The notes below the pieces were generated by a model that ran no database searches, was not told the DNA's origin, and worked only from the letters and a program-made list of their open reading frames with translations. Below, one piece after another: positions 7,418 to 53,407 of a stretch of 64,000 bases of DNA (position 1 is its first letter; each line of letters starts with the position of its first letter). Origin of the DNA: Octopus bimaculoides (Eukaryota); the NCBI RefSeq assembly GCF_001194135.2, contig NC_068985.1, forward strand, positions 31,364,513-31,428,512, written 5' to 3'. Made by a program: the position numbers and the translations under genes.

Positions 7418-10400
7418 CTGTAAAATAAATGAATAAATAAGCATATATAATATGAATTAAAAAATCGTTAAAGTAAGTTTTGTCACAAACCTACCAGGTA
7501 TAAAACTATAAATTGCAAAAGGTTGACAGGAATTAACAAAAATATATCACACACTAACATCATCATCATCATTTAACGTCTGCTTTCCATGCTAGCATGG
7601 GTTGGACAATTTGACTGAGGACTGGTGAAACAGATGGCTACACCAGGCTCCAATCTGATTTGGCAGAGTTTCTACAGCTGGATGCCCTTCCTAACGCCAA
7701 CCACTCCGAGAGTGTAGTGGGTGCTTTTACGTGCCACCAGCACGAAGGCCAGTCAGGCGGTACTGGCGACGGCCATGCTCAAAATGGTGTATTTTACATG
7801 CCACCTGCACAGGAGCTAGTCCAGCGGCACTGGCAACAATCTCGCTCAGATATCTTTTCACGTGCCACCAGCAGAAGTGCCAGGAAGGCGATGCTGGTAA
7901 CGATCATGCTCAAATGGTGCTATTTATGTGCCACCGGCACGGAAGCCAGACAGCTGCTCTGGCAACAATCACGCTTGAACGGTGCTCTTAGTGCTCCACT
8001 GATATGATAATTTAAATCTCTAAAATAATTTCACTCCCATTAGTCTAAAACACCATGGTTGTGGCAATAATAGAAGTATAGTACTATTACTACCATCATT
8101 GAAACCACCCCCACTCACTCCCTGCCACTGATCTGTCTCCTATCTCTGTTCCTTACAGAGAGCTTTCAACTTTAAAAAATCCTATTCTCTACACGTATCT
8201 ATGTATTTCTGTCTTCAATGTTTTTATCTTAAAAAACTTCATATACTTGGCATTGATGTAAACTACATTAGAAAGTACTTCAACCCTAAACAATTGCTAG
8301 CAATACAAAAGCTGAGGGAGATTACACTTTAATGTATTTACTGGATGTGCAAAGTCAGTGTACATGTATAACAGAGCGCTAGTGTTTTGAGGGAAAAATT
8401 GAGCATAAGAATGAGATGCAGCATGCATCTAAACTAATAGTGCTGATTTGGGCATGTAATGCATATGGATGTAGACAGTTGCATACAGAAGTCCTGATTA
8501 TTTAAAGTGGATGGAACTTGTGGATAAGGCAACCCAGGAAGACATGGGTCAAAGTATTGAAAGCTGATCTGAAGACACTGAGCCTTACGAAGGAGATGAC
8601 TAAGAACCAGGATACCAGCACATTGCTGTACTTAAGTCCTGTCCACCACAGCAGAATTGATACAGGTGCTGGTGCCACATAAAAAGTACCCAGTACATTC
8701 TATGGAGTGGTTGGCATTAAGAAGGGCATCCAGCCATAAAACCAATGCCAGAACAGTCAATGGAACCTGGCAGATCCTTGGCCTTACCAGCTCCGGTCAA
8801 ACCCTCCAACATGTGCCAGCATGAAAAACAGACGTTAAATGATGATGATATCTTGATTACTTGATTAGTGAAGTGAAATTTTATTAGCTTATTGAAAATG
8901 AAACAAACTTCTTCAACAATATTTACTGATATGAACAAATTTTAAGTGTGGTTTAACAGTAGTTTAAAGAAAAATAGTTTAAAGGATTTTACCAAACTGT
9001 CATCAACAGGTACTGGATACTTTGATTTTCTTGGAATGACAATAAAAATTATTGTTAGTAAGGTACTCAGTAAAATTAAAATCGTTCCAAGATATCTAAA
9101 ATATAATAAAGAAAAAACATTTTTAACATATACAGTATATATAGTGATTCATACTGAAAATTACATAACTTGAGTAGCAGCTGGCTGAAGGCTTGATGTC
9201 ACAGCTCATTACTAGGATGATGTAAATATTTGGGACAAAGATTTATTTTCAAAGGTTCAGTATGTCAGAGCTGTAAAATCAGTACATCAGTACATATTGT
9301 AAAGCTGAGTTTGTGAGTGTGTGTGTGTGTTGCATCTATAGAAATCCACACCTTACAAGATAGCAATTTGGGAGTCACACCAATGGATTCCTCATGGTCG
9401 AAAATGCCCGGAATCGGCCACTTATTATTCTTTTCTTCCTTCCTAACAAGTGAATTTTTCCATTAAAAATAATTCTAAACCATAACTTCTAACAATTCAA
9501 CTTCTCTGGTTGACTTTAAGACCCCCCCCCCCAATAGGGGCTTTAACTCATACATTTTAGAGTGCCATGTTCTCCATTTTTCAGGAGCAAAAACTTTGAA
9601 TAGGTTTTATAAGATTTGGACTTTGGAATCTGGGCATAAAGATGAGTAGTATGAGATAAATATATCATGATTAGAATCTTTGATAGGGTGTGTAAAGAGG
9701 GAAAGAACCCTCATTAAAATTCTTAATCTCCAATTTTGATGAAACTCGAATCATAGGTATTCCAGTTCATTAGAAAAAATATAAAAGAAAAGTCTAATTC
9801 TTCAATTCCATGTGACACAGGCAATTCCGGGTATCTCTGCTAGTTTTTTTTATAACTGAACGTGATGGAATATGAGAAAAATGAGAAGTATATTATACAT
9901 ATATAGGAAAGTCCTATTAATCTAGGTAATCTGGTATACCTGATTTTCCATCAATTAATTTTGTGGAAGTGATATGACTGGCTACCAACACCACTTCATC
10001 ATTGTGTATATTCAAGTTAAAAAAACGAGTGGCCAGTACTTATATATTATGTATTTGTGTTTATCTATTTATGGTTGTAAATGTACCATCCAACACAATG
10101 ATTTTAAAGTAAGAATTAGGCAAACTCAGAAACAAAAGATAATTTGAAGGTGGGCATAAAAATTGAAAGAACTACCAAACTGCAATAGGTTCAGAAATGT
10201 ATTGATATATGACAAGACAGAGAGAAAGATAGAAAGTTTGTAACACAAAGGAAAATTTAAAGAATTCTTAAAAGACAACCTGCTGAAAGTAACAGACTAA
10301 ACCTGTAGATAGGGTAAGATCCCACCAAAAAGATAACGACATGGTGGTGAAATAGGTCTGTAGTAACGCTGTGCGCATGCGTAGTCTCACGCATACGTGG

Positions 10401-13400
10401 AATTCAACATCCAAGCTTTCCCGCTTTATTCTGTCTCTTTCTTGCTGGCCAGCGATTGAGCAAGGACGTGTCTAGCTGTCTCTCCATCTTTCGAACTCAC
10501 ACTAGACAGCTCACATCAATATACCAACGTCCCAACAACTATGTTCTCACACACCGAAGATGTCTCAACAAACAAGATTAAAGATGTATATTTTCCACAA
10601 TAAATAAATATTGTTTGTGTTGATAGTTTGGAGTTCAGCGTTCCGTTCATATTTCTAATTTAATATAGGAAAGTCAGGTGTACATCTAATGATATATAAC
10701 CCACTATCCTATAAAGTGGTGACCCCGACGTGATTCGTTCATACAACCCTTCTGATCTGTACAGCCTATGTGATCCTGTTCACACAGTTTTTCTTACAAA
10801 CTGGTGAATTCAAACACGCAGCCCGCTGAGCTATTTAACACTTTCCTATAAAGTGGTGACCCCGACTAAGAAAAAACGCGGCCATGGATTCTGGACTACC
10901 AACCTATAACTGGTGACCCCGACTAAAGAACAAATGCGGCCATGGAGACTGAATTACCAAGCAACGATGACCACCAATGCCACCAACATCTCCAACCATA
11001 GTCAACATGACTTACTATGTACACCAAACTAAACCACCGCGGCAAATCTCTCTTCGATTCTGTTAGGTGACTTAGCTTCACCACGNNNNNNNNNNNNNNN
11101 NNNNNNNNNNNNNNNNNNNNNNNNNNNNNNNNNNNNNNNNNNNNNNNNNNNNNNNNNNNNNNNNNNNNNNNNNNNNNNNNNNNNNNNNNNNNNNNNNNNN
11201 NNNNNNNNNNNNNNNNNNNNNNNNNNNNNNNNNNNNNNNNNNNNNNNNNNNNNNNNNNNNNNNNNNNNNNNNNNNNNNNNNNNNNNNNNNNNNNNNNNNN
11301 NNNNNNNNNNNNNNNNNNNNNNNNNNNNNNNNNNNNNNNNNNNNNNNNNNNNNNNNNNNNNNNNNNNNNNNNNNNNNNNNNNNNNNNNNNNNNNNNNNNN
11401 NNNNNNNNNNNNNNNNNNNNNNNNNNNNNNNNNNNNNNNNNNNNNNNNNNNNNNNNNNNNNNNNNNNNNNNNNNNNNNNNNNNNNNNNNNNNNNNNNNNN
11501 NNNNNNNNNNNNNNNNNNNNNNNNNNNNNNNNNNNNNNNNNNNNNNNNNNNNNNNNNNNNNNNNNNNNNNNNNNNNNNNNNNNNNNNNNNNNNNNNNNNN
11601 NNNNNNNNNNNNNNNNNNNNNNNNNNNNNNNNNNNNNNNNNNNNNNNNNNNNNNNNNNNNNNNNNNNNNNNNNNNNNNNNNNNNNNNNNNNNNNNNNNNN
11701 NNNNNNNNNNNNNNNNNNNNNNNNNNNNNNNNNNNNNNNNNNNNNNNNNNNNNNNNNNNNNNNNNNNNNNNNNNNNNNNNNNNNNNNNNNNNNNNNNNNN
11801 NNNNNNNNNNNNNNNNNNNNNNNNNNNNNNNNNNNNNNNNNNNNAGCTCTGCCAACTGACCACGACTTCCTGTGTACGGACATTCAACTTGTGTAATTCT
11901 TTTACGAACTGGATATATAGCTTTTTGTCTCTACAGACACTTTTAATATGTTCTGTGTTTTCACTCACACACACACTTGTGCACTCACACATTTTCTTTC
12001 ATTTGTACATTGCATGCATGTTCTCACGAGTGTACATTTCATTTCTTTCATTTTTCTTTGTGTGTGTTTGTGCTACATCTTGTGGGTGGTTTTCAGTGGC
12101 CATCCTGCCTCAGGCGTTCCAACAAAAAAAAATTATATTATCGTGCGTTCCACACTGGCGAGGGGAGCCCTGTAGTAACGCTGTGCGCATGCGTAGTCTC
12201 ACGCATGAGTAGAATTCAACATCCAAGCTTTCCCGCTTTATTCTGTCTCTTTCTTGCTGGCCAGCGATTGAGCAAGGACGTGTCTAGCTGTCTCTCCATC
12301 TTTCGAACTCATGCTAGACAGCTCACATCAGTATACCAACGTCCCAACAACCATGTTCTCACACACCGAAGACGTCTCAACAAACAAGATTAAAGATGTA
12401 TATTTTCCACAATAAATAAATATTGTTTGTGTTGATAGTTTGGAGTTCAGCGTTCCGTTCATATTTCTAATTTACTATAGGAAAGTCAGGTGTACATCTA
12501 ATGATGTATAACCCACTTTCCTATAGGTCTATAGATAGAGCCATAAAGGCTAACAGACAGGCAGGAAAAACTGCAAGGATGTGGGCAGCAAAGAGCAACA
12601 TGAAGAGAAGTTAGATATCAGGTATACTTAGTAAGAAGAGAAGCTGTGAATAAAAAATTTCAAATGTTCTAAGACATGGTGGCAGTGAATAAAAGAAAAT
12701 TGAGATGACATTGGGGCAACGTGTTCAGAATGATAAGGGTAAATTGGGTATAAGAGAAATCAGTTGTAGTGTACAAGAGAGAAGACTGTAATGGTATAGG
12801 TATGTATTGCTAATGGATGATGACAGCTGCATAAGCAAGTGCTGAGTGTCCAAGTGAATGGTACTTGTGGAAGAGGGAGACCAAGGGAGACTTGGGATGA
12901 GGTGGTGTGAAATGTTGCCAGGATTTTACATCTGATAAAGAAGATGATAGAAGAATATGTAAACTAGTGACATACGGTATTGCAGAAGACCTGAACACCC
13001 ATGCCGACTTAGTGCATGCATTCCTCCCTTTTGCTGTGTCCAGTCTCCATCCTTTCATCTCCTCAACTCATCATGTCATGACACCCATGACTGAGAGGAA
13101 GTTTGTGCATACTGAATATCTCCTGTCTTCATACCAAATCATAAGTCATGATGTTTGAGTAGAAAGGGATTGCATGCCAGCAAACTTTACTCATCCACTC
13201 TGACTCTCCTGTTATCATGCTTAGATATTACCTTGAGTATAAATCCAGACCCCTAATCAACATCTCATCTCTCCTCTGCACCACTCTAGCCATATATAAT
13301 ATGGAGTATCCCCTCCCCAGCAAGCACTTGTTTTAAGTGTCCACTTCAGGGTTTGATGAGGTAGTTAGCCACAATGCATCAATCTTATTTACGTATTTCT

Positions 13401-16400
13401 CTTCTCAAACAAATATACAATTCTCAATTTATTCTAACAAAGTTCACAGATTTTGGTCCATTCTTAATTCTAGACACCAATACCTACTAATCCTCTTGAA
13501 GATGAAATTTGTCTTATTGTATATCTCTAACCTATCATTGTTGCCCAGATTACACAATATTCCAATTTCTTTTGTAAAGCTGATGGTTGATGTAGAATGC
13601 ACGCCACCATTCAGTTCTCTTCCTTGATTGTCAATAATAAAAATTTGCAGTTGTTCCAGCTCATATAGACTATTTTAAATACTTCTGTTGTTTCATCTAC
13701 TCTCTGAATTGCTCCAATCACCATATGTTTGACTATTTGTCCTCCACAGAGTACATCTTTCTAAACTTGTTATTGTTGAGAATCACATTCCGAGTTATTT
13801 TAATGCACACAACTCCTCTAAGCTCCTGTACTCCTCCCAACAACACTGGGACAGAGGCCAAATCCCTTGCCATCTTAAGCTGTCTGCACCAGTAATCTTG
13901 AGTAATCTTGACCAACTTACTAAAACTCCAACTATGCTTGATCTTAAACTCACTGATACTTCAGATATACTGGTTGGATAAAGCTTTACTAATTCTACTC
14001 TCACTATTTTTGGCATCAAATGTGCTTTAGCATCATTCTGCCTGAAATGTGTGTGTGACTGATACCTTTCTCCTTGGCATATCCATTAAACAACCAAAGC
14101 ACATATCCTCAGCCCCTTAAAGTGGATCATGCGCAACTGCACTGCAGTTATACAGACATAGAACACAACATCAGGAGAAAAAAACACAATCACCAATTTG
14201 AAGGTATTCACCTACCACTGCAACACCTTCAAGAAGACCATCATGAAAGCAAAAACTGTTTTCCTGCATTTCACAATCTCCAAATGCTTTTGTCCCCTAA
14301 ATTGCAGCAGCAATTTCTGATTTTTTGTCAAAATGATTTTTACTAATTTTGCAGAATCTTCTACCATACTTATCACCTGACAGGACTTTTTAAATAGCAC
14401 CTGTACGGATTCCAATACTGCACTTGCAGACACACACACCACTTATAATCTTGATTAGGCAAGGAATAGTGAGGTTGACTGATGAGCTAGGATATTCACT
14501 TAAAGAATTTGGATGGATCTAAAGAACTGAGTTTTTTCTAAAATAGAGTGAATTTTTGAAATTGAGAGGAAGGGAGCAAGTTCTAAATGGGAGTGACTTA
14601 TTGAGTAAATGCTTTGCCAAATATCTTCATTGCATCTAGGCAGAAAGAAGAAATAATTGGATTATGTGTTGGTTGAATCTGTTGTAGATGATAAAGAAGT
14701 TAGAGAAAGGAAATGACAGTTCTATGCAAAGATCAAGTCTTTGATGATTGACCTCTGCACAAGAGACTGCAATTTGGGTCCAAGCAAATGTTTTTGCTAT
14801 GATAAATTTGACATCCCAAGTAAACTATCGTATAAAATTTTCCTGAAACTTTTCCATTCTATTTATATTTTGAATGGTACCCAAATTCCAGTGTCCTATT
14901 GTAATTTAGATTTAATATAAATTTTGTACTCTTCGTTTGTAAGAACACTGTAAATCGTTGTAGATACAGAAATAGCTTGTTAAAAAATTTCATGACAATA
15001 TTGGAGTTTAGATCATTAGAAATAATTATTCGTAAATCTTTAATTGCAGAAACCAAGGGAATGAGAGTAAAATCAAATTCATATTGTTCTGAATATTGCC
15101 ATGTCTGAAATCTAATTTTAATTTTAGATTTGAGTCAGCGATTTTAGAGGGATGGTTCAGTCGATTACATCGACCCAGTGTTCAACTCGTACTTATTTTA
15201 TTGACCCCGAAAGGCAGTCAACCTCGGCGGAATTTGAGCTCAGAACACAAAGAGCCAGAAGAAATGCCGCTAAGCATTTTCTCGATACGTTAACTCGCCA
15301 CCTTCATAAATGAAAACATTGCATTTGGACATGGCAATTTTTAGTTGCACTGAATTTGCTAATTGAATACGTTTTTAAAATCCTTCTTACAATGTGCACA
15401 GTCACCAAGTTAAAAAATGTCGTTAGTAACTCCAACTCAACGAGACAAATTGTCCAGTGTCTCCTCCGTAATCCTCCCGCTAGATTCTTTGGTAATCTTC
15501 AAGTTTAGGGGGGTAAAAAAAGTAAATAAAAATATTCAAGGGAAATAACTGAACGACTTACCAGTATTATCCGTTTTCTTCTAGCTGTTTATAAATAAAT
15601 CACACCCTAACCCTAACGTCAATCAAATCACGTGTGTGATTTATTTATAAACAGAGATGTACGTAGAATACTGGTAAGACGTTCAGTTACTTCCCTTGAA
15701 TATTTTTTTTTTACCCCCCCCCTAAACTTGAAGATTACCGATTCTTTAATCACTCTTTCTACAGGAACTACCCAACTACGGAAACATTGGTATTTCATCT
15801 CGCACAACAGCCATCTGAGAAGTACCGACATATCAGATACACATTTAAATGTTGCGTCTACTTATTTTGGCATAACTACAGGGTTTTACCCACCAGACTT
15901 TGGGAGGTCATAACTTTCAGAAAAATGAATATTTTTTAATGAAATTTTCTATGCATATAGTATTTACTATGTAGAATCCGAATATACAAAAATTTCCGGT
16001 GAAAGTGTTTTGGAATTGGGGTGGGGGACAATTTTCGGAAATTCCCCTCCCAAAGTCTGGGCTGTAAAACCCTGTAGTTATGCCCTTATTTTATCACATT
16101 ATATTTTTTTTGTCTCATTACAATTAGTGGCATCGCAGGAAGAGAAGATTTGGGAATAAAATTTGATGCCCTCAGTTTTGAAATTATACATTTTTCCACA
16201 CTCGTTCACCAGTAATTAATCTATTAATTAACACAATTAGAAGGTTAATATAGATGTTAATACAGGAACACATCGAGATTATGGAATTAAAGCAATTTAA
16301 ATAGTACAAATCAATGACGTCTGAAAGGAACAATTAAAGAACTGAAAAAACTTCAATTGGGTGTAGCCAAAACGGCATACTGAGAAAAATATTTTGCGTC

Positions 16401-17214
16401 ATATATTAATGAATTTACTTTTCGAAACAAGTCACTGATTGGTTAAAATTACCCAAATACGACAACTTTAACACGAAATAACTTCTGAAATACGAAATTT
16501 TGTCAAAAGCGTTCAGAGTAAACCGTGTTCTACGTAAGAAATTCTACCAGTATTCGAAGTTTCAAACTGTTCAGTTAAAAAAAAAACATCAATTAAAAAA
16601 CCTGTGATTCAAACTGAACAGATCCAAATAAAGTAATCTAGTTACAGTCTGATACCAAAGGCGAGTGATTGCCAACATCACTTAAATTCAATGTGTGTTG
16701 CCAACAACATATTTTTTCTTTAATTAAAAAATTTCCACGTGACTTTACGCACTCATATAAGTAAAATCTGCTTGTTTGATAATCTTTAAATTTTACTAGC
16801 ACAATCTTAGAAAAAAAAAACAAAAAGATTCCACGCATTTACCTGAAAGGGGCTTTTCGTAAGTACATTAACAAAAATTTTATATTTTAACTTGTATATT
16901 TTAAGTTTCGTAGATAAACTTTACCGTTAAATATATTCAAATTTTGATTTGAAATTAAAGAAAAAATTATAATGTAAAAATAAACGTGCCTAACTTTGAT
17001 GAAGTTTTATCAGATTATAATTAAAACTTCAAAACAACATAAACGGTTTATATATATATATAAATATTGTGTATGTAGATATATAAAATATTCAAATTTG
17101 TACTTGCCTGATTTTTCCAGTAGAATAACTGGTGAATACACAAATGGTCAGTGATATGATCCACATAGAAGCCAAAAGGACGATACCAACACCAACACCA
17201 AAAATCAGCCCCAT
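7274..17214 (-). CDS. TMEM218: Transmembrane protein 218 (ciliary transition zone), 3 coding exons, 117 aa
   Basis: Exons 17214-17108, 9095-8993 and 7417-7274 splice to MGLIFGVGVGIVLLASMWIISLTICVFTSYSTGKIRYLGTILILLSTLLTIIFIVIPRKSKYPVPVDDSLIYEYKENHLVLLLVFCCISAFIGFVFYLVHHIMQPIYTMPMTKSNLS. It has three hydrophobic segments and resembles remembered human TMEM218 (LGVGAG..W..C, FPR..FP, HYVLEPIYAKPL). Confidence 0.88.
7558..8002 (-). mobile_element. RTE LINE 3' UTR fragment
   Basis: Reverse complement of the family tail, with several gtgccacc(g/a)gcac units. Confidence 0.85.
8440..8850 (+). mobile_element. Decayed RTE LINE 3' fragment
   Basis: cccaggaagacatggg (PRKTW) and tail cagacgttaaatgatgatgat. 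Confidence 0.75.
8993..9095 (-). CDS. TMEM218: TMEM218 coding exon 2
   Basis: ttttag|A TAT...TTG|gtaaaa, 103 nt, phase 2-0; hydrophobic helix followed by IPRKSKYP. Confidence 0.88.
9287..9843 (+). mobile_element. Non-autonomous Helitron-like element
   Basis: A|TC start followed by taaagctg and (GT)n; GC-rich subterminal segment then CTAG|T end. Confidence 0.4.
10359..12525 (+). mobile_element. Short LTR retrotransposon (Gypsy-like, probably non-autonomous) in TMEM218 intron 1
   Basis: 355-bp LTRs at 10359-10713 and 12171-12525 (about 11 differences), TGTAG..CTATA ends, 4-bp TSD GGTC, PBS TGGTGACCCCGACGTGATT at 10717-10735, purine tract at about 12157-12170; 759 N inside. Confidence 0.9.
12560..14460. 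mobile_element. Old RTE fragments in opposite orientations (+ about 12560-12915; - about 12930-14460)
   Basis: + strand [16 protein letters not shown]; heavily decayed RT-like sequence on the minus strand. Confidence 0.5.
15132..15308 (-). mobile_element. SINE with a MetaSINE-like central domain
   Basis: Minus strand aaattccgccgaggttgactgcctttcggggtcaataaaataagtac. Confidence 0.55.
15491..15739. mobile_element. Merlin-type palindromic MITE
   Basis: GGTAATCTTC..GAAGATTACC, long inverted arms, perfect 8-bp TSD GATTCTTT, central CCCTAA repeats. Confidence 0.85.
15869..16084. mobile_element. Merlin-type MITE
   Basis: GGCATAACTACAGGG..CCCTGTAGTTATGCC, perfect 8-bp TSD CTTATTTT. Confidence 0.85.
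16200..16625 (+). mobile_element. Decayed Merlin (IS1016-like) transposase C-terminus and 3' end
   Basis: Broken frames give NIDVNTGTH and KYFASYINEFTFRN, similar to the Merlin VDP.TG.HT and F.SYL.EF..R motifs; ends in GATCC; the 3' region matches the MITEs at 56025 and 57128. Confidence 0.55.
17108..17214 (-). CDS. TMEM218: TMEM218 coding exon 1 (GC donor)
   Basis: ATG at 17214; ends AG|gcaagt, 107 nt, phase 2. Confidence 0.85.
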
Positions 17215-20372: not shown

Positions 20373-20972
20373 CCCATATTAATTTATTTTTAATTAAATT
20401 TTCAGAAATTTTGAATTGAATTTTTTCTAGAATGCCAAATACAGCCTTATCCATCCTCTTATACAGATTCACAATATGTAAAAGCACGTGCATATATTGT
20501 AGTAGGCAAGAATCATGTGACATAGGTGCCGAAACTACCAGATCATGTGATTTCAGCATAGTGCACTTCCTCAGTGGTAGGTGCCCAGTCACTGCATACC
20601 AGCCAAACCTCACTGCCAATGATATATAGAATAACAGTGTCTTTTCAGATACTGATATCACACATAGCCAGCAGGTTTATTAGAAAATAAATATTAGCAA
20701 CAGAAGCGGTATTAATACCAAAAGCGATCTTTATATCCTCTGGTACCCATGTCTGATGATTTTTTTATATGCTACAATATATGTGTGCTTTTAAACACTG
20801 TGAGTCTAAAGGAGAGGACCTCGCAAAACAAATAACACAGTATTTGGCATTCTAAAAATACATCCACATTAAGTTGGATATAAAGATTGCTCTTCGGTAT
20901 TAATTCTGCTTTTGCCATTAATATTTATTTTCTAATAAACCTGCTGGATATTTGTGACACACCTACACAAGG

Positions 20973-21579
20973 GTGCACCACCCAACCCAACTTTGTTTGA
21001 AAAAGTGCCACACCCTAACAGTTGAGGGAACCCGTGGAAGAGGCAGGCCCAGGAAGACCTGGGCTGAGGTGGTGAGGCAAGACCTTCGTACATTGGGCCT
21101 CACCAAGGCGATGACTACTGACCGAGACCTTTGGAAATGTGCTGTGCGTGAGAAGACCCGGCAAGCCAAGTAAGATCGTTGCCAGTGCCCCTGGCTCTTG
21201 TGCGGGTGGCACATGAGATGCACCATTTTGAGCGTGTCCGTTGCCAGTACTGCCTGACTGGCTCCCGTAGGATTTTCGAGTGAGATCGTTGCCAGTGCCC
21301 CTGGACTGGCTTGTGCGGGNNNNNNNNNNNNNNNNNNNNNNNNNNNNNNNNNNNNNNNNNNNNNNNTTCGAGCGTGGCCGTTTTCGTGCGGGTGACACGT
21401 AAAAGCACCCACTACACTCTCTGAGTGGTTGGCGTTAGGAAGGGCATCCAGCTGTAGAAACTCTGCCAAATTAGATTGGAGCCTGGTGTTGCCATCCGGT
21501 TTCACCAGTCCTCAGTCAAATCGTCCAACCCATGCTAGCATGGAAAGCGGACGTTAAACGATGATGATGATGATGATGA
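20973..21579 (+). mobile_element. RTE LINE 3' fragment
   Basis: [27 protein letters not shown], then the family 3' UTR and (GAT)n tail. Confidence 0.88.
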
Positions 21580-25634: not shown

Positions 25635-27681
25635 TCAATTGAAGTTGAAGTTATTCCAAGTCCTAGCCAGAGCCAAAGTTGCATTAGTCATACTGACAGA
25701 AACAGGAGATGTAGCCAAGGAAGAACTTATGGCTTGGTGAGAAGTGGTCAGTGTTTGACCAGTATCTGCAGCAGGAAGTGAAGCAATAGTTTGTACAGTC
25801 TGTTGTTGTTGTTGATTGGCAGCAGCAGCAGCAGCTGCCAGTTGAGTATGCACCAGATTCTGTCCAAGGTGACTGAGTTCAATTGTTGTCGTTGGCTGAC
25901 CACCAACAACGGACACTGTGCCAATTTGTGCTGGTTGAATTTGAACCATTGCTGTATGGCCTGTAGGGTTAGCCGTATTAGTAACTCTAGCCACTGAGTA
26001 TTCTCCTGAAGGCTGGTAATCATGAGATAATGTTTGTGTCAGCTCAGTCATAGCTTGGGTGAGGAGATCAGCCTGTTGATATTGGTCAGAGATAGCTTGT
26101 GTTGAAACAGGACCATGCACCTCAGCCATAAATTCTTCCTCAGTAACACCATGGGAATTGTCAGACAACATTGCAGCTGTGTGTTCTTCTTTCACCCGTT
26201 TGACAGATGATTGTGGAGGTGACATTTCAGGATGCTTTTTCCTGTGATGTTGCATCAACTTTGCCTTGCTGGCATACTGCTTGTGACAGAAATCACACTG
26301 ATGTGGCATTGTGGTAATACTCCCCACCATTTGGGAGTATGTTGGGTTTGGATGGCCTGGAACTTCATGGATTTGAGACTTCTTCCGACTGCTCATTGGT
26401 AGTTCAGATCCAGGATGGTTCTTTAATATATGAGCTTTTCGCTTTGAGCTGGATTTGTAGACTTTTTCACAGTACTGACAATAATAATCTCTCTGAGTTT
26501 TCAATATAGGAAGCTTCAATTCAGGCACAGTATCTGGTTTTATGTCAGGATGTCTTTTGGCCAAATGGTTAACCAGCATACCCCGCCGTTTGAAACCAAG
26601 GAGACATGTGTGACATTTGTATATAAAACGGTGATAATCATTAGGTGATACTTTGGGGATGAATTTTTTATGGTTGACTGGTTTTTCTTCCTTGTTTGCT
26701 AATCGTGCTTCACGCTCTTCTGAATGCATCCTTTTCATATGTTCTTTTAGTTTGTCCTTTCTTTTGAACTGGCGACCACAGCTTTCACACATAAACTCCC
26801 GGTGAGAGGAATGTCGTAACATGTGCAATTTCAGCTTATCCGGCCGTGGAAATAGCTTATCACATTCAGGGCAGGGATATTTTATTGCTGAATGGAATGC
26901 ACGCATGTGCTTTCGAATAGTAACAAATTCATCAAATACCCGGGTACATATGGGACAGTTATATTTACCATTGGCATCTTCATGTTCAGTCACATGACTC
27001 TTTAATGAACCTACTTGGTCAAAGTCTGAATGACAGAGTGGACACTCATAATATTTTTTATCACTATGTGTCTTCATGTGACAGGACAATGCAGAGTTAT
27101 TCATGAAGCGCTTAAAACACACTTGACATTGAAGTGGTTTAGAATTCTCATCACCATGACACAAAAGGTGTTTCTGAAGGCGTTCATAGTTACTAAAAGC
27201 TTTCCAACATTTCTGACATTTATGTGGTCGTTGAGGATTGTGCAACATCTTGCGTTTAGTTTTGCCATGTACACTAGCATGTTCTATAAGGTCTTGTTGT
27301 TTTTGGAAGGATAAAAAACATACTGGACACGCCAAAACATCTGAGTCTAAAGTAATGACACTATCAGACTCTTCCAAAGAAGCAACTTCATTGCTGGCAT
27401 CTCCATTGGTAATCTGTTGCATTTGGATGGCATTTGCTAGCACTGGTTTTGCTTCATTGGGATCACAAGCAAGCCTTTTCACTTCATCTAAGCCAACATC
27501 TTCAGCAGCATGGGTGAGTGTGTGTAAGTTCAGTAAGTTTGAATTATCAAATGTCAGGTCACAATGTGTACACACCCACTCATTTCCACCAGTTACTTTG
27601 CCTTTCTTACGATACAGAGATTTTAATGATCGACGTCTAAGGGCCTCATGATCCAACCTGCGATGATATTTCTTCAGTGTT
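25635..27681 (-). CDS. PRDM10: PRDM10 terminal coding exon, 11 C2H2 fingers plus Q/A-rich tail
   Basis: Open frame of 2047 nt after ttttccag| (phase 2); stop at 25637-25635. Confidence 0.95.
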
Positions 27682-30600
27682 CTGGAAAAAAAAAACATTT
27701 GCATATTAATAAGTGTGTATGTGTATTTGGGTGTGTATATGTGTGTGAATAATCAATTATCCTTATAAAAAGCAAAGTTTGTTTCTTTGTATGTTGACTG
27801 CTGAAAACACTAAACAAAATTGATAATATTTCAGGTATTTCATTTCATTTAAATTAATTTGATCATTCTGCAGATAACTGTGCACTTATCTTCCGAAAAC
27901 GGAATGGAGAGGGCCAAGTTGGTGGTGTATTGGCTCCTATTTCTAGCAATTCATGTACTGTCTATTTCACCATAATGCATTTTACAGAGTGAAAAAATAC
28001 TTCACCTATCAATCAATCCACCTCCAACTTTCTCAAAGTTTATACATTACAGTTATTCCTTTGAAGTTACTGCTGGACCTCTGCCTTCTCTCTGTCTATA
28101 TGTCTCTTTCTATGTCTCTATCTCTCTCTCTCTGGTTCTATATGTGTCTCTCTCTCTCACTATCTCTACCTCTTTTTTCTCTCAAGAGAAAAACATGTGA
28201 GAGAGAGAAAGGGGGCTCCACAGAAAAACTGCTTTCTCTCTGTCTATATGTCCCTCTCTATGTCTCTATCTCTCACTACCTCTACCTCTTTTTCTCTCTA
28301 GAGAAAAAATATGTGAGACAGATAGAAAGGGGTTGGTAGTAGTGGTGACAGTATAGATTAATAGGTATTGGTGGGTGTGGTGGTAGTATTGGTAGCACAA
28401 TTTAGATATTCTAAATAAATGTTAAAAATTATGTTATGTAATATTGAAATACCTTTTAACAACTTTTATTGTAAGGAAAATGGGCATTATGATAGATGCC
28501 AATATGTGCCTTATTAATTAATACATTTGAGTACAAACCGGGCTGAAGGCTGGGAGGCCTGCTAGCATAATATAAAAGTACTTAAGAGGCATAAATATAA
28601 TTTTTGTAAATTTATCAAGCATAGGGAAGTACCTTTGAAGTAACAAAGTTAAAATACAGAAAAAGAAAAATTTAAACTGGCTTCATATGAAGCGAAACAT
28701 GGTAAAACAAAACAACAGTAACACAAACAATTTGTTTCTTCTTACCAATCATCAGAGAAACTAATCAAGAGGCTCTAAAAAAATTTCATTTATAGCTTAG
28801 TAAGAGGAAAAAGGTTAGTACTTATGACCTTTTTGTGAGGCCGCCAAGATTAGTGGAGAGAAAGAAAGATCTTAAACTGAATCTGAAGGCTTGCAATGGA
28901 GAACATTTTTAACAAACACTGAAGTGTTGAGTTATTGGTATTTTAGAAATGAAGGAAATCTCAAGTGCAGGAGATAGCTGTGAAAACAACTTAGAGGATT
29001 CGGCAAAATACCCTTACAGATGGATCTTCTTAGCTGTTTTCACAGTTATTCTCCTATATTTGAGATGTCCTTAATTTCTTATAATGCAAAGAGCCAGTTG
29101 GTGGTTAAGCCTACCACCTTGGGGATTTGGGAATATTGCAGTAAATCAAATGTTAGCACTCCGTCGCTTACGACGTCGAGGATTCCAGTTGATCCGATCA
29201 ATGGAACAGCCTGTTCGTGAAATTAACGTGCAAGTGGCTGAGCACTCCACAGCCACATGTACCCTTAACGTAGTTCTCGGGGATATTCAGCATGACAAAG
29301 TGTGACAAGGCTGACCCTTTAAATTACAGGTACAACAGAAACAGGAAGTAAGAGTGAGAGAAAGTTGTGGTGAAAGAGTACAGCAGGGTTCGCCACCATC
29401 CCCTGCCGGAGCCTCATAGAGCTTTAGGTGTTTTCACTCAATAAACACACACAATGCCCGGTCTGGGAATCGAAACCGCGAGCCTATGATTGCGAGTCCG
29501 CTGCCCTAACCACTGGGCCATTGCGCCTCCACAGTAAATCAAATAGGTAAAAGGGAATTAGCAATTAACTCAGACAAGATTATATATAAATGCCAGCAGT
29601 CAAAACATTGAGGAGGATCACAGCTGATATAACACAGACATGGTTCTTGGGCCAGAATTAACAAAGTCGAGGAAATGCAGATTGCGAGAGTAACTGGGTA
29701 ACAAATATTTATAGAATTTCATTTTAATGTAAATCTTCCAACAGCATATGTGAAGATTTGCAATAAATTTATGAAAGCAAGGAAATGACTAAATAGAAAC
29801 TAGTAACTTACTTGTTTAGATAGAATGTAGAAGATTTCTTCTTCCAAGGATAATTACAGATTTCTCCATTGGCAGACTTGAAAAATAAAAAGTTTTATGA
29901 GGCATTATTTATGATAAATTTAAATGTACTAGTTTGTTTATAAAAGCCATTAAAATAATTATATTATTAAATATATTAAAATAATTATATTATTGGCATA
30001 GCTTAAGTATACGCTTATGGAGTAGAAAATTTCCCCAACTTTTGCCAAGGAATAAAAGATTTATAACATCAAAACTAATAAGGATATAATCTTGTTTTTA
30101 TAAATATTTACAGTGATCCTAGTTGAAATAATGGTTTTATAAATACCTTCTGATAAAATTACCTATCATATACAATTTGCAGTAGTCTCTATAAAAAATA
30201 GTTTATAGAGCAATAATAGAGAAATAATTAAGTTATTCTTTCTATCAGGTCATCCCATAAGTTCTGTCTGAATTTTGAATATAGAAAACAAGTGATCAAA
30301 TGTTATATTCAATTGAAATTTAATCATCAATGTACTTTCCCTGATCATCTATGACTTCCTTCCATCTATTTACAAGCTTTTTAATCCCATCAATGTAAAA
30401 CTCTTTTGGTTTCAAAGCGAAGAACTCTGAAATGTCAGTTTCGACCTCCTGCTGGCTTGCAAAAGTTATGTTCCCCAAATGATTCTGTAAACTACAAAAC
30501 AAATGGTAGTCTGAAGGAGCAAGGTCAGGAGAATAAGGTCGATGGGGAATTTTTTCCCTACCAAGTTCTTCAATCTTCTGTGATGTGATTTTTGCAGTGT

Positions 30601-33600
30601 GGGGTCGCACATTGTCCTGATGAAACATCACACCTTTTCGATTCACTAAAGCAGGTCTTTTTTACTTCAAAGCTTGGTTCAAACACTCTAATTGCTGACA
30701 ATAGACTTGAGCATTGATTGTTGCATTAGGTGGTAACAATTCAAAGTGAATTACTCCTTTGCAATCCCACTAGACAGAGAGAAGAACCTTTTTCCCATGA
30801 AGTTCCCTTCTTGGTTGTGGTTGAGCTTTTTCCCTTTTACCAAGCCACTGTTTACGACGTTAAACATTTTGATAGAAGATCCATTTTTTGTCACCAGTCA
30901 CAAGTCTATCCANNNNNNNNNNNNNNNNNNNNNNNNNNNNNNNNNNNNNNNNNNNNNNNNNNNNNNNNNNNNNNNNNNNNNNNNNNNNNNNNNNNNNNNN
31001 NNNNNNNNNNNNNNNNNNNNNNNNNNNNNNNNNNNNNNNNNNNNNNNNNNNNNNNNNNNNNNNNNNNNNNNNNNNNNNNNNNNNNNNNNNNNNNNNNNNN
31101 NNNNNNNNNNNNNNNNNNNNNNNNNNNNNNNNNNNNNNNNNNNNNNNNNNNNNNNNNNNNNNNNNNNNNNNNNNNNNNNNNNNNNNNNNNNNNNNNNNNN
31201 NNNNNNNNNNNNNNNNNNNNNNNNNNNNNNNNNNNNNNNNNNNNNNNNNNNNNNNNNNNNNCAACTGGACGTCCTGTTCGATCTTCATCTTCAAGGCTAA
31301 AATCTCCACTTCTGAATTTTGCAAATCATCTTCTGCAAGTTTTTTCATTCAAGCATTCTTTCCCATAAACTGAGTGTATGTTTCGAGTCGCTTTGGTTGC
31401 TGAGTTTCCTTTTTTGTACTCATAAAGCATTATGTGCCTCAAATGCTCTTTGGATACTTCCATGTTAGAAAGGGTTTTAATCAAAGAAATTTTAATTCTA
31501 TTATTCTGTAAAATAATATTTAATTAGTTTAAATGTACACAAATGCATAAAAATAATTTTTAATTCCATTAGACATTCTAAAATACTATTAAATCTCATT
31601 CAATTTTAAAAAAGGTAAAATCGGACAGAACTTATGGGATGACCTGATACGTTGGGGATGATATTATATACTATTAATTGGCATTAGAAACAGCATACAG
31701 TTATGATACTATTGAACTAATTACACAATATTATCACATTTCTGAACAATTAACTGGCTACAGATCTAATGCAACCATAAAAACAGATATCAAACAGAAT
31801 AAAGGATAAGATTCAAATACATAAAAAAATAAAAGTCCATGAATATAATTAGAGAAGACTGGAGAGAATTAATGGAATCAAATATTATGCAAAAGAATTA
31901 AAGATTAGGATTACACAAAAGAATTAAGGAAAGATGACAATTAATAGCCAAATTGAGAAAGATTAAGAAAAAATTTAGAAACAAAATCACTCTGATTATA
32001 AATAAAAGAGAATAATAGAGAAGCAAAAGGACATTAGTTATATTTACCACTTTTGGGTGCCGTCTCTTTCGTTTCAATGTTCCTGCTTGTAAAGAGAATC
32101 CTTTACGTCGGTTCTTCTGCATCATTGTTTCACCTCTAATACTAAAGTCATCATCTTGATGGCGGTTTGATGTATTTTCTTCATGAACAACTAAATGCTT
32201 CTGAAGTGCAGCTGATGTTTTAAATCGTTTATTACATTCATAACAAGGCCATTTGCGTTCTTGTTCATCCAAAGCTGTCAATTGGATAAATTCAGAATGA
32301 ATCACATGAAATTCTAATTTACAAAATGGAACATTTTAAAGTTAACATTACTTTTAACCCTTTAGCAATCAGATTCCTCTGTTCAAATGTGATGCTTATT
32401 TATCCATTGTTTTTAATTAATCATGCATTAACTCATTGCTTTCAGATTTCAATGTAGTGATTGTTATTTTTAGAATGACATTGTAGGGTAGGTGTAAGAG
32501 GTCTGACCTGGTTTGTTTGAATATAAAACAGGTAAATATTTGGGCCAGATTTGGCCAGTTTAAATGCTAAAAGGTTACAGTTATAAATTCTTTGCATCAG
32601 TTATTAAGATATAATAATATTATGATGGCTAGTCTTTAACTAAATCAAACTTGTCCATTTTACATGTCTTCTGTCCTCCTCCAGCAAAGTCCCTCAATCT
32701 TTCAGTCACATACTAAACTGCCTTCTCATTTATAATTTGTCTTGAAGCATGAACTTTGCATGGATTCAAATTGAACATTAACTGTATTAACATCAAATAG
32801 TTATCTCTACTTTGTAGAAGAATCTGAGAAGGCTTATCTTCAATTGAAGGAGAGCCTGATAGGGATAGCGATTCTGCTCCACTTCCTTAGATAAAATTAT
32901 ACAGAAGTAATTAGTTTTAAAGTTTTATGGCAGTGGTTTTTATCTGGGGTCCATATAAGATTTTATTGTTAAAAAATTTATGTGCAATAAATTAGTTATA
33001 CATCTCCAATGCACAAAATATTAAAATTTTTTCATACAATTCCTAATAATATTTCATCATCATCATCATCGTCGTTTAACGTCCGCTTTCCATGCTAGCA
33101 TGGGTTGGACGATTTGACTGAGGACTGGTGCAACCGGATGGCTACACCAGGCTCCAATTTAATTTGGCAGAGTTTCTACAGCTGGATGCCCTTCCTAACG
33201 CCAACCACTCGGAGAGTGTAGTGGGTGCTTTTACGTGTCACCCGCACGAAAACGGCTACGCTAAAAAAACAGTAAGATTTTCCTTTTATGTATAGTGAAT
33301 AGCTGTGGACATCCAGTAGAGAAAAGTAGGAATCAAAGGGGTCTACAGGCAAAAAATGGTTGCAAACCACTGCTCTGTGGTATACAACCTAGTTGCCATA
33401 TCACAGTGGAAAAAAAGAATTCAGTGTTATGATACATAAAATATATAAACTATAAATAATGACAATGGTGATAATAATGATGATGATGATATATTTCACA
33501 AGTATTTTTATATATTGTAGTATTATAGTAATACATCAGGCAACAATAAACTCAAAAATAGAAGGAAATAGAAATAAAAACTCTCGGTTTAATTCTAAAA

Positions 33601-35562
33601 TTGTATAAGAATGATTGTATTTTAGAAACAGTTTAATTTCCATCATTATAATTTGCTACTTTAGATATTTAAAAAAATTTTATGAGTAGATATTAATATT
33701 TTCAGAAATATGAATATTAAAAAGAAAAAAAAAACATAGTGACAGCCTCATCAAGAAAATTTCAAAATGATTGCTCAACCTTCTAAAATAGCAGCTAAAT
33801 CTTCCCCAAATCACACCTTAGCTTCTTAGAAAAAGCATACAATGGATAATGTAATCTAGATTGCTTTGCTCACAGGTCTTCTAGTGTAAGACTAATTTGG
33901 GGGTGAAACAACAACCTATTAAATAATGTTAATCAAATGTAGAATTATTGGTTTGGTTGAAATCCCAAGTAAGTTTTAACATTCGTCCATTACGTTGTAC
34001 TAGTGTGAAATACTGGCATCTTCTGGGGTTTTTTCCTCATGTAATGTTGTTAAGAAGTGTTACAGTATACTGCAATTTATCCCATTTGTTCCAGAGATTG
34101 TTCATCTGTTTGAAATTCTGACAATAAGAGAACTTGAGATGAGCACTGGAAGCTATTAAGGCACTTGTTCATTATATGGCAGCTTAAAGTGTGAGCTGCA
34201 TATCTCCATAGTACCTACTGTAAACAGATGGACAGATTCAAGAATCCATTGTTTTTGTCAGGAACACAATGAAGGTTTAGATGCAGGTATGGCCTGCTGA
34301 CTCTTTTGAGGAGAGGCTAACAATTCAGTTAGCCTAGAAGACTAACTTTCAGCAAGACAATAAGGTTACTTTTGTGTAATTTCAAGTCAAGTAATTTTTA
34401 ACACTTTTCATCTATGTTTTATGGCAATCATTTAAATTTATCAATTTAAAAAAAAAGAAACCATAAATATTTCCATCTTTATTGTAAACCTTTATACCAT
34501 TTACAGCTTGCATTTACTAATAACATATTTCATACACAATCAATCATCAGATATTTTATTATTTGCCATCAATGAAATGCATACAAGAGTATTTAAGGTT
34601 ATTGAATTGAAGTTAAAGTAAACAGAGGTTGTGACATTAATAACTTTCTTAAAGTGTATGTACCCAACCATGAATTAAAACTGAATTGTTAACTTACTCT
34701 CTAAGCATTTCAACAAAAGCTAAATTCTTATCGATAGCATCCATTAGTTTCTATGTAAAACATTTCTTGCATTAAAAACATGAAAATGTGGACAATAACC
34801 TTCAATATCTTCATCTGTGATATCAAGAACATGTGCTCCAATACGTTCAGCATAATGTGCTGCATACCACACCTAGAAACAGAAAAAGGTGATGATATTT
34901 TCTATAATAGGAATAATGTGGAAGTGTGATGTGCACCACTCATAAATAAACTTTTTACACTGGAGTTACATGCTTGTGTGTTGAAGAACAGCACCAATGT
35001 TTCTATATTTGAAATCGAATATTTTTACAAGAAATAAACATTTCAACAAATTTCTGTTACCAAACTGGAAGATGCCCTGCCCCACCAGATTAGACATACA
35101 ATTTAATGCAATTTAGCCTTTTCCCCATTTGCATATTTTCACTAGGCATGGTTATTTTAGATGTAAACATTCCATTAACAATATTCTTCCTCTGATGGGA
35201 TAGAGGTATGTAATCTTTATTCCTCTTTTCTCTTAAATTTTCCTTCTTGCATGTTTCCTTGTGATTTTTTTTTTTTTTTGTGGATGCAGGCTTGGCTATG
35301 TAGTAAGAAGTTTACAGCCAAACCACATGGTTTTAGGTTCAGTCCTGGTGCATGGCACCTTAGGCAAGTGTCTTCTACCATAGCCTTAGGCTGACCAAAC
35401 ACTTGTGGGTGGATTGTGTGGTAAGAAGCTTTCTTCCAAATCACATGGTTCTGGGTTCAGTCCTACTGCGTGGCACCTTGGGCAAGTGTCTTCTACTATA
35501 GCTTTGGGCTGACCAAAGTCCTCTGAGTGGATTTGGTAGATAGAAACTGAAAGAAGCTCATC

Positions 35563-35600
<38 letters not shown>

Positions 35601-37949
35601 TCCCACCATTGCTTGACAACTGATCCTGGTGCGTTTATGTTCCCATAACTTAGTGGTTCAGCGAAAGAGTCTAATAGAATAAGTACTAGGCTTACAAAGA
35701 ATGAGTCCTGGGGTTGATTTCTTTAACTAAAACCCTTTAAGGCAATGCTACAGCATGACTGCAACAAGTAAAAAGAATAAAAAAACAGAATGTGTGTGTA
35801 TGTGTGTTACTGTCCCCTTGCCTTGACTTTGCATGATAGTTGTAAACGAGTGTCATCATGCAAGTGGCGTCTTTCGTTTCTAATCTTCTCTGCAAACATG
35901 GTTATGGGAAAATATTATCTTTCTTGGAAAGAGGTGAGGGCTGTTGACAAGAAGAACATTCAGACATGGAAAATCTACCTCAGCAAATTCTGCCTGACAC
36001 ATAAAGCATGGCAAAATGATGATAATGATTTTTTTATCTCACCATCTTCCTCCCATTTCCACGCAGAGTAACTATGTCATCTGAGTCTGAACAATTGCTG
36101 GTGTGCACGGTACACTACACAAGCCTGTTCAATTACTGCACTATCCAAGAATGAAACCTGTGGTAGCTCACGTATAACTCTTGTATTCATTAAACAATAC
36201 TTATCTCTTGCTTGATTGTGTACTTTTTTGCTGATCCTGCCAACAAGCAAGCAGTACACTATATATNNNNNNNNNNNNNNNNNNNNNNNNNNNNNNNNNN
36301 NNNNNNNNNNNNNNNNNNNNNNNNNNNNNNNNNNNNNNNNNNNNNNNNNNNNNNNNNNNNNNNNNNNNNNNNNNNNNNNNNNNNNNNNNNNNNNNNNNNN
36401 NNNNNNNNNNNNNNNNNNNNNNNNNNNNNNNNNNNNNNNNNNNNNNNNNNNNNNNNNNNNNTATAACATCTTCCGTCACATGCCAGGGAGAAAAACTAGA
36501 AGTAGTTGATAGCTTCTGTTACCTAGGTGACTAAGTCAGTAGCTGGGGTGGATGCTCTGACAGCTTAGCTGCTAGAATAAAAATAGCCAGGGCAAAGTAC
36601 AGAGAGCTCGTACCTCTGCTGGTAACAAAGGGCCTCTTGCTCAGAGTGAAAGGTAAACTGTATGACGCATGTGTGCAAAAATCCATGCTACACGACAGTG
36701 AAACATGGGCTGTGACTGCTGAGGACATGTGTAAGCTTGCAAGAAACGAAGCTAGGATGCTCCGCTGGATGTGTAATGTCAGTGTGCATATACAACAGAG
36801 TGTAAGCGCCCTGAGAAAAAGTTGGACATAAGAAACATCAGATGTGCTGTGCAAGAGAGACGACTGCGCTGGTAATTGTCATGTGTTACATATGGATGAG
36901 GACAGCTGTATGAAAAAGTGTTACATCCTAACAGTGGAGGGAACCTGTGGAAGAGGTAGACCCAGGAAGACCTGGGATGAGGTGGTGAAGCACAACTTTT
37001 GAACATTGGGCCTCACAGAGGCGATGATGAGCGACTGAGACTTTTGGAGATATGCTGTGCTTGAGAAGACCCGGCAGTCAAAGTGAGACTGTAACCGTAG
37101 CCTATGCCAGTCTAGCATAACTGGCCTGTTTAAGAGTACCCTTCAATCATTAGGCAAGACCTATTAAGTCAAGTGAAATCATTGTTGTGGCCGATGCCAG
37201 TACCACCTGACTGGTCTTGTGCCGGTGGCACATAAAAATACCATTCAAGTGTGGTCGCTGCCAGTGCCACTTGATTGGCTCCTGTGTCAGTGGCACGTAA
37301 AAAGCACCATTCAAGTGTGGTCGATGTCAATACAACCTGACTGGCCCTTGTGCCGGTGACACGTAAAAAAGCACCCACTAAACTCCGGAGTGGTTGGCAT
37401 TAGAAAGGGCATCCAGCTGTAGAAACCTTGCCAGATCAGATTGGAGCCTGGTACAACCTTCTGGCTTGCCAGTCCTCAGTTAAACCGTCCACCCCATGCC
37501 AGCATGGAAAGCAGACGTTAAATGATGATGATGATATACACACACACCCAGTAATATGACAAATTTGTACTTTACAGATTGCATGATAATTAGTTATTAT
37601 TAGTTATTTTTAAACAAAAGTGCACAACTTTTTATAAAATTATGAATTATTTGGGGCTGCAGCCCAAGTTTACAGACTGAAAGAATAGTTGGAAAGAACT
37701 AATCTCTGATACACAGTATAAAGGAAGTATATGTGTCTTATCTTGTAGCTAGTCTTCTGCTACAGAACATTCTGTTTTGTGAACAATATCTCTCCTTAGA
37801 TGATGTATAATGAATAGATCACTTTATGACCAGCAGTCATAGAAATTGAATATAAAACTGCCCAGAACAGACAAATGTGTATTACAGGAAAAATAACCTC
37901 AAAATGCTTCTTAGGAGCATGCACACTTGGTAATAAGTCATAAGTACTC

Positions 37950-38026
<77 letters not shown>

Positions 38027-47453: not shown

Positions 47454-48330
47454 ATATACATACATACATATATATATCATCATCATCATCATTTAGCATC
47501 TGTCGTCCATTGGTTTAACCAGGGCTGGCAAGTTGAGAGGCTGCATCAGACTCCAATCTAATTTGGCATAGCTTCTATGGTGGGATGCCCTTCCTAATGC
47601 CAACCACTCTGAGAATGTAATGGGTGCCACAACTACAATTTCACTTGGTTTGATGAGTCTTCTTCTCAAGCACAGCACATTGTTAAAAGTCTTGGTCATT
47701 TGTCATTGCTTCCATGAGGCCCAGTGCTTGAAAGGTGCTTTTCATTTTCAATGCTATTGGCATGGGCACTACTTATGTGACACTAGCATTGGTTACATTG
47801 CCTCTGTGAGATCCAACATTCGAAAGGTGCTTTTTACATGCCACCAGCATGGATCCCAGTTACGTGACAGTGACAAGAGCCACTACTGTGATTTCACTTG
47901 GCTTGACAGGTCTTCTCAAGTACAGCATATCACCAAAGGTCTTAGTCACTAGCCACTGCCTCTGTGAGGCCCAACATTTGAAGATCATGCTTTACCACCT
48001 CATCTTGTGTCTTCTTGGGTCTCCCTCTTCCATAGTTTCCTTCCACTGGTAGAGATCAGCACTTCTTCACACAGCTGTCCACATTCATATGTATCACATG
48101 ACCATACCAATGCAGTCGTCTCTCTTACACACCACATCTAATGCCTCATGCCAGACTTTTCTCTCAAGATGTTTACACTCTGTGGTACATGCACACTGAT
48201 ATTGCACATCTAGCAAAGCATACTAGCTTCATTTCTTTCAAGCCTACACATGTCCTTGGCAGTCACAGCCCATGTTTTACTGCTGTGTAGCATAGCTGTT
48301 CACACAGACATCATACAATCTGCCTTTCTC
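46824..48330 (-). mobile_element. Two decayed RTE fragments (46824-47270, 47476-48330) with a SINE head between them
   Basis: Family tails at 46824 and 47476; a decayed RT C-terminus in 47950-48330. Confidence 0.7.
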
Positions 48331-53395: not shown

Positions 53396-53407
53396 TTGCG
53401 ATGGAAC

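Follow-up and report, generated by a model that had tools for sequence, protein, structure and literature searches.

Stacked LTR-end/tRNA-Trp primer site junctions in the leader of an old LTR retroelement of Octopus bimaculoides

The element and its boundaries

A 64,000-nucleotide stretch of the Octopus bimaculoides genome (NCBI RefSeq assembly GCF_001194135.2, contig NC_068985.1, positions 31,364,513 to 31,428,512 of the forward strand), hereafter the window, carries a long terminal repeat (LTR) retroelement in which the junction between the LTR end and the primer binding site (PBS) for tRNA-Trp is found several times over. Positions are given as those of the window, and the features of the element are collected in Table 1. 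The LTR pair consists of two 355-bp direct repeats that agree at 344 of 355 positions (96.9%; 11 mismatches, no gaps). Both LTRs have TGTAG as their first bases and CCTATA as their last, so the termini are TG...TA in place of the canonical 5'-TG...CA-3'; the same ending is found in two comparator elements, L001 and L002, which are introduced below. The target-site duplication GGTC stands on each flank; its length is ambiguous (4-6 bp), since with an LTR end set 2 nt earlier it could extend to as many as 6 bp (TAGGTC). A PBS begins 3 nt past the 5' LTR and matches tRNA-Trp plus CCA at 19 of 19 positions, and the polypurine tract GAGGGGAGCC lies at 12160-12169, directly against the 3' LTR. The LTR pair, the duplication, the polypurine tract and the PBS mark a bona fide LTR retroelement. 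This copy of it is old, with an LTR divergence of 3.1%, and it is probably inert.

As assembled, the element is 2167 bp long, including a gap of 759 N (11086-11844) that takes up about one third of it and leaves 698 bases of visible internal sequence. An autonomous Ty3/Gypsy element carries gag and a pol in which protease, RT, RNase H and integrase follow one another in this order. Within these 698 bases, with the other 759 lying in the gap, open frames on the element strand did not exceed 39 codons except where they extended into the 3' LTR, Pfam gave no domain, and nothing resembled the gag or pol of either comparator element; the part of the leader at 10961-11085 likewise showed no similarity to either gag or pol. 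A protein search with a 73-aa frame of the LTR gave no match. The small size, the lack of visible coding sequence and the gap together leave two options, namely that the element is a non-autonomous derivative or that its interior was lost in assembly. Judged by its sequence, it is apparently a short, non-coding LTR retroelement (non-autonomous or internally deleted) that primes reverse transcription on tRNA-Trp.

Table 1. Features of the LTR retroelement, in window positions
Feature	Position	Strand	Remark
Target-site duplication GGTC, left	10355..10358	.	same 4 bases outside both LTRs
5' LTR, 355 bp, TGTAG...CCTATA	10359..10713	+	direct repeat of 12171-12525
AATAAA signals in 5' LTR	10599-10608	+	
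Spacer AAG, LTR end to primer site 1	10714..10716	+	direct reading
tRNA-Trp copy 1, reverse complement of positions 76-35	10717..10759	+	10717-10735 perfect, likely active PBS
Possible decayed junction, CCTAT then GTGATCCTGTTCACACA, resembling 10730-10745 of copy 1	10765..10786	+	weak
tRNA-Trp copy 2: TGGTGA, 10-nt deletion, complement of positions 60-36	10802..10832	+	19/25 identity
Internal 12-nt LTR-terminus copy CACTTTCCTATA	10839..10850	+	identical to 12514-12525; no supported homology further left
58-bp unit A: CCTATA, AAG, 13-nt tRNA-Trp complement (10854-10866), 36-nt tail, ATG at 10884	10845..10902	+	
58-bp unit B: CCTATA, AC, 13-nt tRNA-Trp complement (10911-10923), tail, ATG at 10942	10903..10960	+	
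Leader remainder to contig end; open frames starting there <=32 codons	10961..11085	+	no Pfam match
Assembly gap, 759 N, inside element	11086..11844	.	
3' internal region, non-coding as far as visible	11845..12159	+	frame scan, no Pfam match
Polypurine tract GAGGGGAGCC(C)	12160..12170	+	adjoins 3' LTR
3' LTR, 355 bp	12171..12525	+	direct repeat of 5' LTR
Target-site duplication GGTC, right	12526..12529	.	

Repeated junctions and tRNA-Trp copies in the leader

The 13-nt core of the primer site, TGGTGACCCCGAC, is found at exactly three places of the 64-kb window, namely 10717, 10854 and 10911. A search that allowed 2 mismatches found no further matches, and three matches were reached in none of 100 shuffles (mean 0.34). 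All three cores are preceded by CCTATAA plus one or two bases. The first follows the end of the 5' LTR, CCTATA at 10708-10713, and the other two form the junctions CCTATAAAG plus core at 10845-10866 and CCTATAAC plus core at 10903-10923. The latter two belong to a head-to-tail repeat at 10845-10960 with a period of 58 bp, 2.0 copies and 84% identity, as determined with Tandem Repeats Finder (TRF). A stretch resembling the LTR end also lies just upstream of the second core: CACTTTCCTATA at 10839-10850 is identical to the 3' LTR end (12514-12525), and the longer CACTTTCCTATAAAGTGGTGACCCCGAC at 10839-10866 repeats 10702-10729 over 28 nt with a single mismatch, at the position equivalent to 10706. 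There the 5' LTR has A for T, which is one of the 11 differences between the LTRs. Homology to the LTR end stops at 12 nt at 10839, and none was found to the left of 10802 or 10903.

These readings bear on a preliminary description of the locus, made from the sequence alone, which had proposed more than one LTR-end/PBS junction in a tRNA-Trp-primed LTR element. With three exact cores, that proposal holds, and the recurrence of CCTATA plus core at 10845-10866 and 10903-10923 is read directly in the sequence. The tandem arrangement of the last two junctions is likewise borne out, but the unit is 58 bp long and not 57 bp. Each unit does contain the ATG ascribed to it (10884 and 10942), opening frames of just 10 and 19 codons. 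The second junction had been singled out as identical to the 3' and not the 5' LTR end; the identity is real, but it calls for no special mechanism, since a single later substitution at 10706 in the 5' LTR suffices to produce it.

The resemblance to tRNA-Trp extends well beyond the cores. The reference for this comparison was the antisense strand of cytoplasmic tRNA-Trp plus CCA, in the human/mouse sequence and not that of the host; a full-length human antisense probe (PMC5737633) is identical to it, and the mouse 3' fragments and primers of PMC7555719 agree with it. At the LTR-proximal site, 37 of 43 positions (10717-10759, copy 1) are identical to antisense tRNA-Trp from the CCA end to anticodon position 35. 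Copy 1 thus comprises the last 42 nt of the mature tRNA, CCA included, and is longer than an 18-nt PBS; its match beyond the 13-nt core was equalled by 0 of 2000 and 0 of 5000 shuffles. The differences are unevenly spread, with 0 in the first 19 nt vs 6 in the following 24 (P=0.022). A second copy, at 10802-10832, is more decayed than the first, and its score was equalled by 5 of 2000 and 6 of 5000 shuffles. Both copies start at the complement of CCA, and they end in the anticodon loop no more than one base apart (position 35 vs 36). It is well established that CCA is not encoded by eukaryotic tRNA genes, and it is added after transcription. Given that its complement stands at the start of both copies, they were copied from mature tRNA by reverse transcriptase.

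It could be asked whether a tRNA-derived short interspersed nuclear element (SINE) or a tRNA pseudogene had simply been inserted antisense into the leader, the more so as SINE-like repeats are plentiful in the window. We regard this as scarcely credible. A tRNA-derived SINE has a sense-oriented head with the 5' half of the tRNA (A and B boxes) and no CCA, whereas the copies here comprise only the 3' part (positions 35-76), run antisense to the element and include CCA, which is generally known as a post-transcriptional addition. Moreover, the tRNA-like sequence begins exactly 3 nt past the LTR end, where a PBS belongs, and no tRNA was reported by ARAGORN in the window or by Rfam in 9500-13500.

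The remaining parts of the leader are less clear. The segment at 10765-10786 aligns locally to copy 1 with a score that was equalled by 50 of 2000 shuffles (p about 0.025), and it has no significant match to tRNA-Trp itself; it may be the much-decayed remnant of a third tRNA copy. No tRNA origin could be demonstrated for the tails of units A and B, the 36-nt stretches that follow the cores of sites 2 and 3 (p about 0.05 to 0.5). In all, three intact junctions of the 'U5 end/tRNA-Trp' type and two or three decayed ones are stacked in the leader.

A match to the tRNA of at least 18 bases is found at the LTR-proximal site only, and sites 2 and 3 match over 13 bases. Given that the LTR-proximal site is the only one that is perfect over the length that a tRNA primer would renew or require, the sequence suggests that it was the site in use. 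The run of 19 perfect nucleotides followed by 6 differences in 24 fits the renewal or use of site 1 only. The PBS complementary to the 3' end of tRNA-Trp reported in the preliminary description (10717-10735, following CCTATA and the AAG spacer) is therefore confirmed as a perfect 19-nt match, but the multiple priming sites that it envisaged go beyond what the sequence shows, as sites 2 and 3 have only 13 matching bases and the others are deleted or decayed. The same is true of its derivation of the junctions from related elements. Its proposal that the junctions arose by reverse transcription is strengthened, given that two of them carry long copies of mature tRNA including the CCA end. Of the weak junction it listed, the TGGTGA at 10802-10807 with its tRNA-like tail stands, but the sequence before it does not significantly resemble the LTR end. 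What the description reported of the sequence is confirmed apart from minor corrections, and its interpretation as a whole is partly supported.

Age and possible origin of the stack

The LTRs of one copy are identical at integration, and their divergence can be set against that of the two 58-bp units. Units A and B differ at 9 of 59 aligned columns (15%), compared with 11 of 355 positions between the LTRs (3.1%); the divergence of the units is five times that of the LTR pair. A unit divergence of this size at the LTR rate has a binomial probability of P=8e-5 (Fisher P=6e-4). This difference indicates that the rearranged leader predates the insertion and has passed through at least one round of retrotransposition. 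It also argues against a duplication at the locus and against assembly stutter, from which identical copies would be expected.

Stutter would arise if a short-read assembler had looped at a repeat node, the shared junction of 22-28 nt, and thereby joined leader variants of different family copies. Such an artefact could be entertained because the contig ends at 11085, within the element and 125 bp from the stack region, at the 759-N gap, and because the 28-mer common to 10702 and 10839 is a possible graph node. It is nevertheless very unlikely: besides the 15% difference between the units, the unit-to-unit boundaries at 10833-10850 and 10897-10910 consist of unique sequence that must exist in reads, and the tRNA copies are collinear with the real molecule. 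The window as a whole has 7 N-gaps (at 727, 11086, 21320, 24110, 30913, 36267 and 61831), several of them within repeats, and belongs to a gapped, scaffold-level assembly.

The persistence of the stack over at least one retrotransposition cycle, together with three intact 13-nt cores in diverged surroundings, would also be expected if the sites were a selected feature, in which multiple tRNA-Trp sites are kept for redundant priming, for primer packaging, or for soaking up 3' tRNA fragments that would otherwise block the real PBS. We consider this improbable. The conservation of the cores lies within chance, with a probability of about 0.12 that 13 nt remain unchanged at 15% divergence, and 10 nt of the core of copy 2 have been lost. 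In addition, the leader has no RNA fold that is more stable than those of its shuffles (z=-0.96), and each of the two comparator elements has one site. A further reading, equally improbable, would give the stack a working role in an LTR family of cephalopods or molluscs: cleavage of tRNA-Trp in its anticodon loop would yield 3' halves that act as primers and are copied in full into the progeny, or the sites would be kept as redundant primer sites or as decoys that catch inhibitory 3' tRNA fragments.

The explanation that we favor, to which we assign about an even chance, is that the plus strand was read into the tRNA primer, that the reverse transcriptase switched between template ends, and that later copies inherited the result. 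It was pieced together from the anatomy of the element and from what is known of the course of reverse transcription. As a rule, plus-strand strong-stop DNA stops one base short of the 1-methyladenosine at position 58 of the primer (m1A58), which yields an 18-nt PBS. The role of m1A58 as the plus-strand stop has been described, as has read-through, which leaves the product with a 3' end that is unmatched by the opposite strand (PMC8599865). In an ancestor of the present element, plus-strand strong-stop synthesis would have passed m1A58 and copied the primer up to the anticodon loop, where it may have met a second block or reached the cleaved 5' end of a 3' tRNA half. At the end of the tRNA template, the enzyme could have continued only by a jump to another template end, and the acceptor would have been a minus strand that stopped a few bases inside U5, at the point where RNase H had left the RNA template. 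Copying from this acceptor would re-make 'U5 end, spacer, PBS' downstream of the tRNA copy, which is the order seen at 10802-10866. The 58-bp duplication, which takes in the final 6 nt of U5 and reaches 36 nt beyond the PBS, may have come about by an end-of-template jump or by slippage; the pair would fit a jump during minus-strand synthesis in which the enzyme left one RNA at its trimmed 5' end and moved on to the leader of a co-packaged RNA. The rearranged leader would then have been tolerated by replication and inherited over later retrotransposition cycles while decaying. The cycle that made this copy would have primed at the LTR-proximal site (19/19); the 13-nt sites may have kept the ability to bind tRNA, and the copies with deletions would be dead.

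Several points weigh against this account. Inheritance is deduced from one copy and from one divergence comparison over 59 columns, and some of the 6 mismatches of copy 1 may be species differences, given that the tRNA reference is not that of the host. Copy 1 and 10770-10786 seem to share bases that are not those of the tRNA (GTTCA for GAACA; a weak signal), which would imply that a mutated unit was duplicated and not that independent read-through was repeated. The first CCTATA and the next CCTAT are spaced 57 nt apart, close to the 58-bp period of units A and B, and this spacing also fits plain tandem amplification. Furthermore, the tRNA copy crosses position 37, which in eukaryotic tRNA-Trp is usually 1-methylguanosine (m1G), a block to reverse transcriptases. 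The sequence of the individual jumps is not recoverable from a single copy.

The similar spacings, the possibly shared derived bases and the crossing of position 37, which is awkward for pure read-through, would all be accommodated by amplification at the DNA level. In that case, slippage or unequal exchange in a master copy would have multiplied a unit of about 58 bp, made up of the LTR end, the PBS and the first bases of the leader, which then decayed; reverse transcriptase would be needed for the first tRNA copy only. Units A and B are indeed a clean head-to-tail pair. However, their tails do not significantly resemble either the tRNA or the tails of the two tRNA-Trp copies, and the length of LTR end that is retained varies from junction to junction (12 nt at 10839, 6 nt at 10903). 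Such an amplification would still have to precede this insertion. It is possible but, in our judgement, rather unlikely.

Relation to known elements and surroundings of the element

The two comparators are Ty3/Gypsy elements of other hosts that were retrieved by a metagenome scan for the junction motif; because they were fished by that motif, they serve only as single-PBS comparators and are uninformative on kinship. L001 and L002 have one PBS each, of 14 and about 23 matched bases, and their gag and pol are normal. Like the present element, the tRNA-Trp users among Ty3/Gypsy elements (Gypsy-32_NVi, PMC10886601; L001 and L002) have an LTR ending in CCTATA, a spacer of 1-3 nt and a tRNA-Trp complement; a polypurine tract precedes their 3' LTR, and their target-site duplication is short. 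They differ in having one PBS of 14-23 nt plus gag and pol, whereas here there are three cores, two tRNA copies and no visible coding sequence. L002 lies on a marine metagenome contig, and its minus strand reads, from 1641 to 430, as the 3' end of pol, a G-run, an LTR, a PBS and gag; this layout represents either two elements with a common LTR or a two-LTR element that was collapsed in assembly.

Primer read-through in retroviruses offers a parallel for the tRNA copies. Circle junctions carrying tRNA sequence were reportedly described by Colicelli and Goff (J Virol 1986). As in the octopus element, retroviral read-through leaves reverse-transcribed tRNA DNA that starts at CCA and continues past the 18-nt PBS. 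The retroviral products are, however, aberrant and usually dead-end forms from infected cells or in vitro reactions, whereas the copies here are integrated, flanked by a target-site duplication, repeated and apparently inherited. Extended pairing with the primer is another likeness: the boxes of Ty1 pair with the T and D arms of initiator tRNA, retroviruses make contacts outside the PBS, and in both, as here, the leader is complementary to the tRNA past its 3' 18 nt. Boxes of the Ty1 type are short, separate and selected, in contrast to the continuous 43-nt stretch of 86% identity found here, which has the appearance of a decaying copy.

Tandem repeats occur in the 5' untranslated leaders of Gypsy-like elements, where they are arranged head-to-tail just downstream of the 5' LTR, as in this case; the difference is that the repeat unit here takes in the LTR terminus and the PBS. 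With terminal-repeat retrotransposons in miniature (TRIMs) and larger non-autonomous relatives, the element has in common the two LTRs, the PBS, the polypurine tract, the lack of visible coding sequence and the 4-bp duplication. TRIMs are defined by a total length of <1 kb and no coding capacity, and animal TRIMs have a 4-bp duplication (PMC10886601). At 2167 bp, about one third of it gap, and with 355-bp LTRs, the present element exceeds that size. A Helenus-type TRIM carries a tRNA-like gene in its LTR, whereas here the tRNA-like sequence runs antisense and is located outside the LTR, in which no small-RNA gene was found. Scans of viral contigs for a double PBS and for the junction gave no matches, and a scan with a single 14-mer gave only chance matches in phage contigs; this collection is no yardstick for the element. 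Nothing usable was found in the literature on natural elements with two PBSs.

The stack is a variant on known parts, namely the PBS, primer read-through and leader repeats, and not a new kind of system. Read-through and template jumps of reverse transcriptase are known mostly in vitro and from dead-end viral DNA. If confirmed, the stack would show that such errors of reverse transcription can be survived and inherited in an integrated, transmitted element. It would also make the enzyme's stop on a natural modified tRNA readable, here in the anticodon loop, and it would offer a natural setting in which to ask whether additional primer sites benefit or hurt a retroelement. The evidence is one old, decayed copy, and its practical weight is small.

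Two further observations concern the element and a related LTR. The U5 segments 10624-10637 and 10672-10685 are each 86% complementary to the leader at 11017-11031 (14 nt), and together with this leader segment they enclose the whole PBS stack. A diverged solo LTR of a related family is present at 53407-53779, starting with TGTAGTGACG and ending with CTCTCCTAAA; over its final 64 nt it shares 86% identity with the end of the 5' LTR, and no PBS follows it.

The host gene of the window is a PRDM10 orthologue on the minus strand (25635-45174), in which a large C2H2 zinc-finger exon lies at 25635-27704 and a further C2H2 exon near 31898-32305. For the large exon, the best database match is 73% identical (a Logan assembly), and named mollusc proteins reach about 57-60%. 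The SINE-like repeat family is represented at 7550-7925, 33054-33236, 47539-47627 and 62600-62782 with 64-94% identity, and by inverted copies at 20963-21505 and 37388-37467. Some of these copies are followed by internal tandem units of 64-70 bp, and ARAGORN found no tRNA inside them. An open frame on the minus strand at 363-839, interrupted by a 10-N gap, has a weak match to the Mos1-type HTH_48 domain (E=0.001, under the Pfam cut-off) and is probably the remnant of a mariner-like transposase. Finally, a direct duplication with 85-94% identity was found at 56060-56593 and 57165-57683, about 1.1 kb apart, with a distant copy at 16431-16585.

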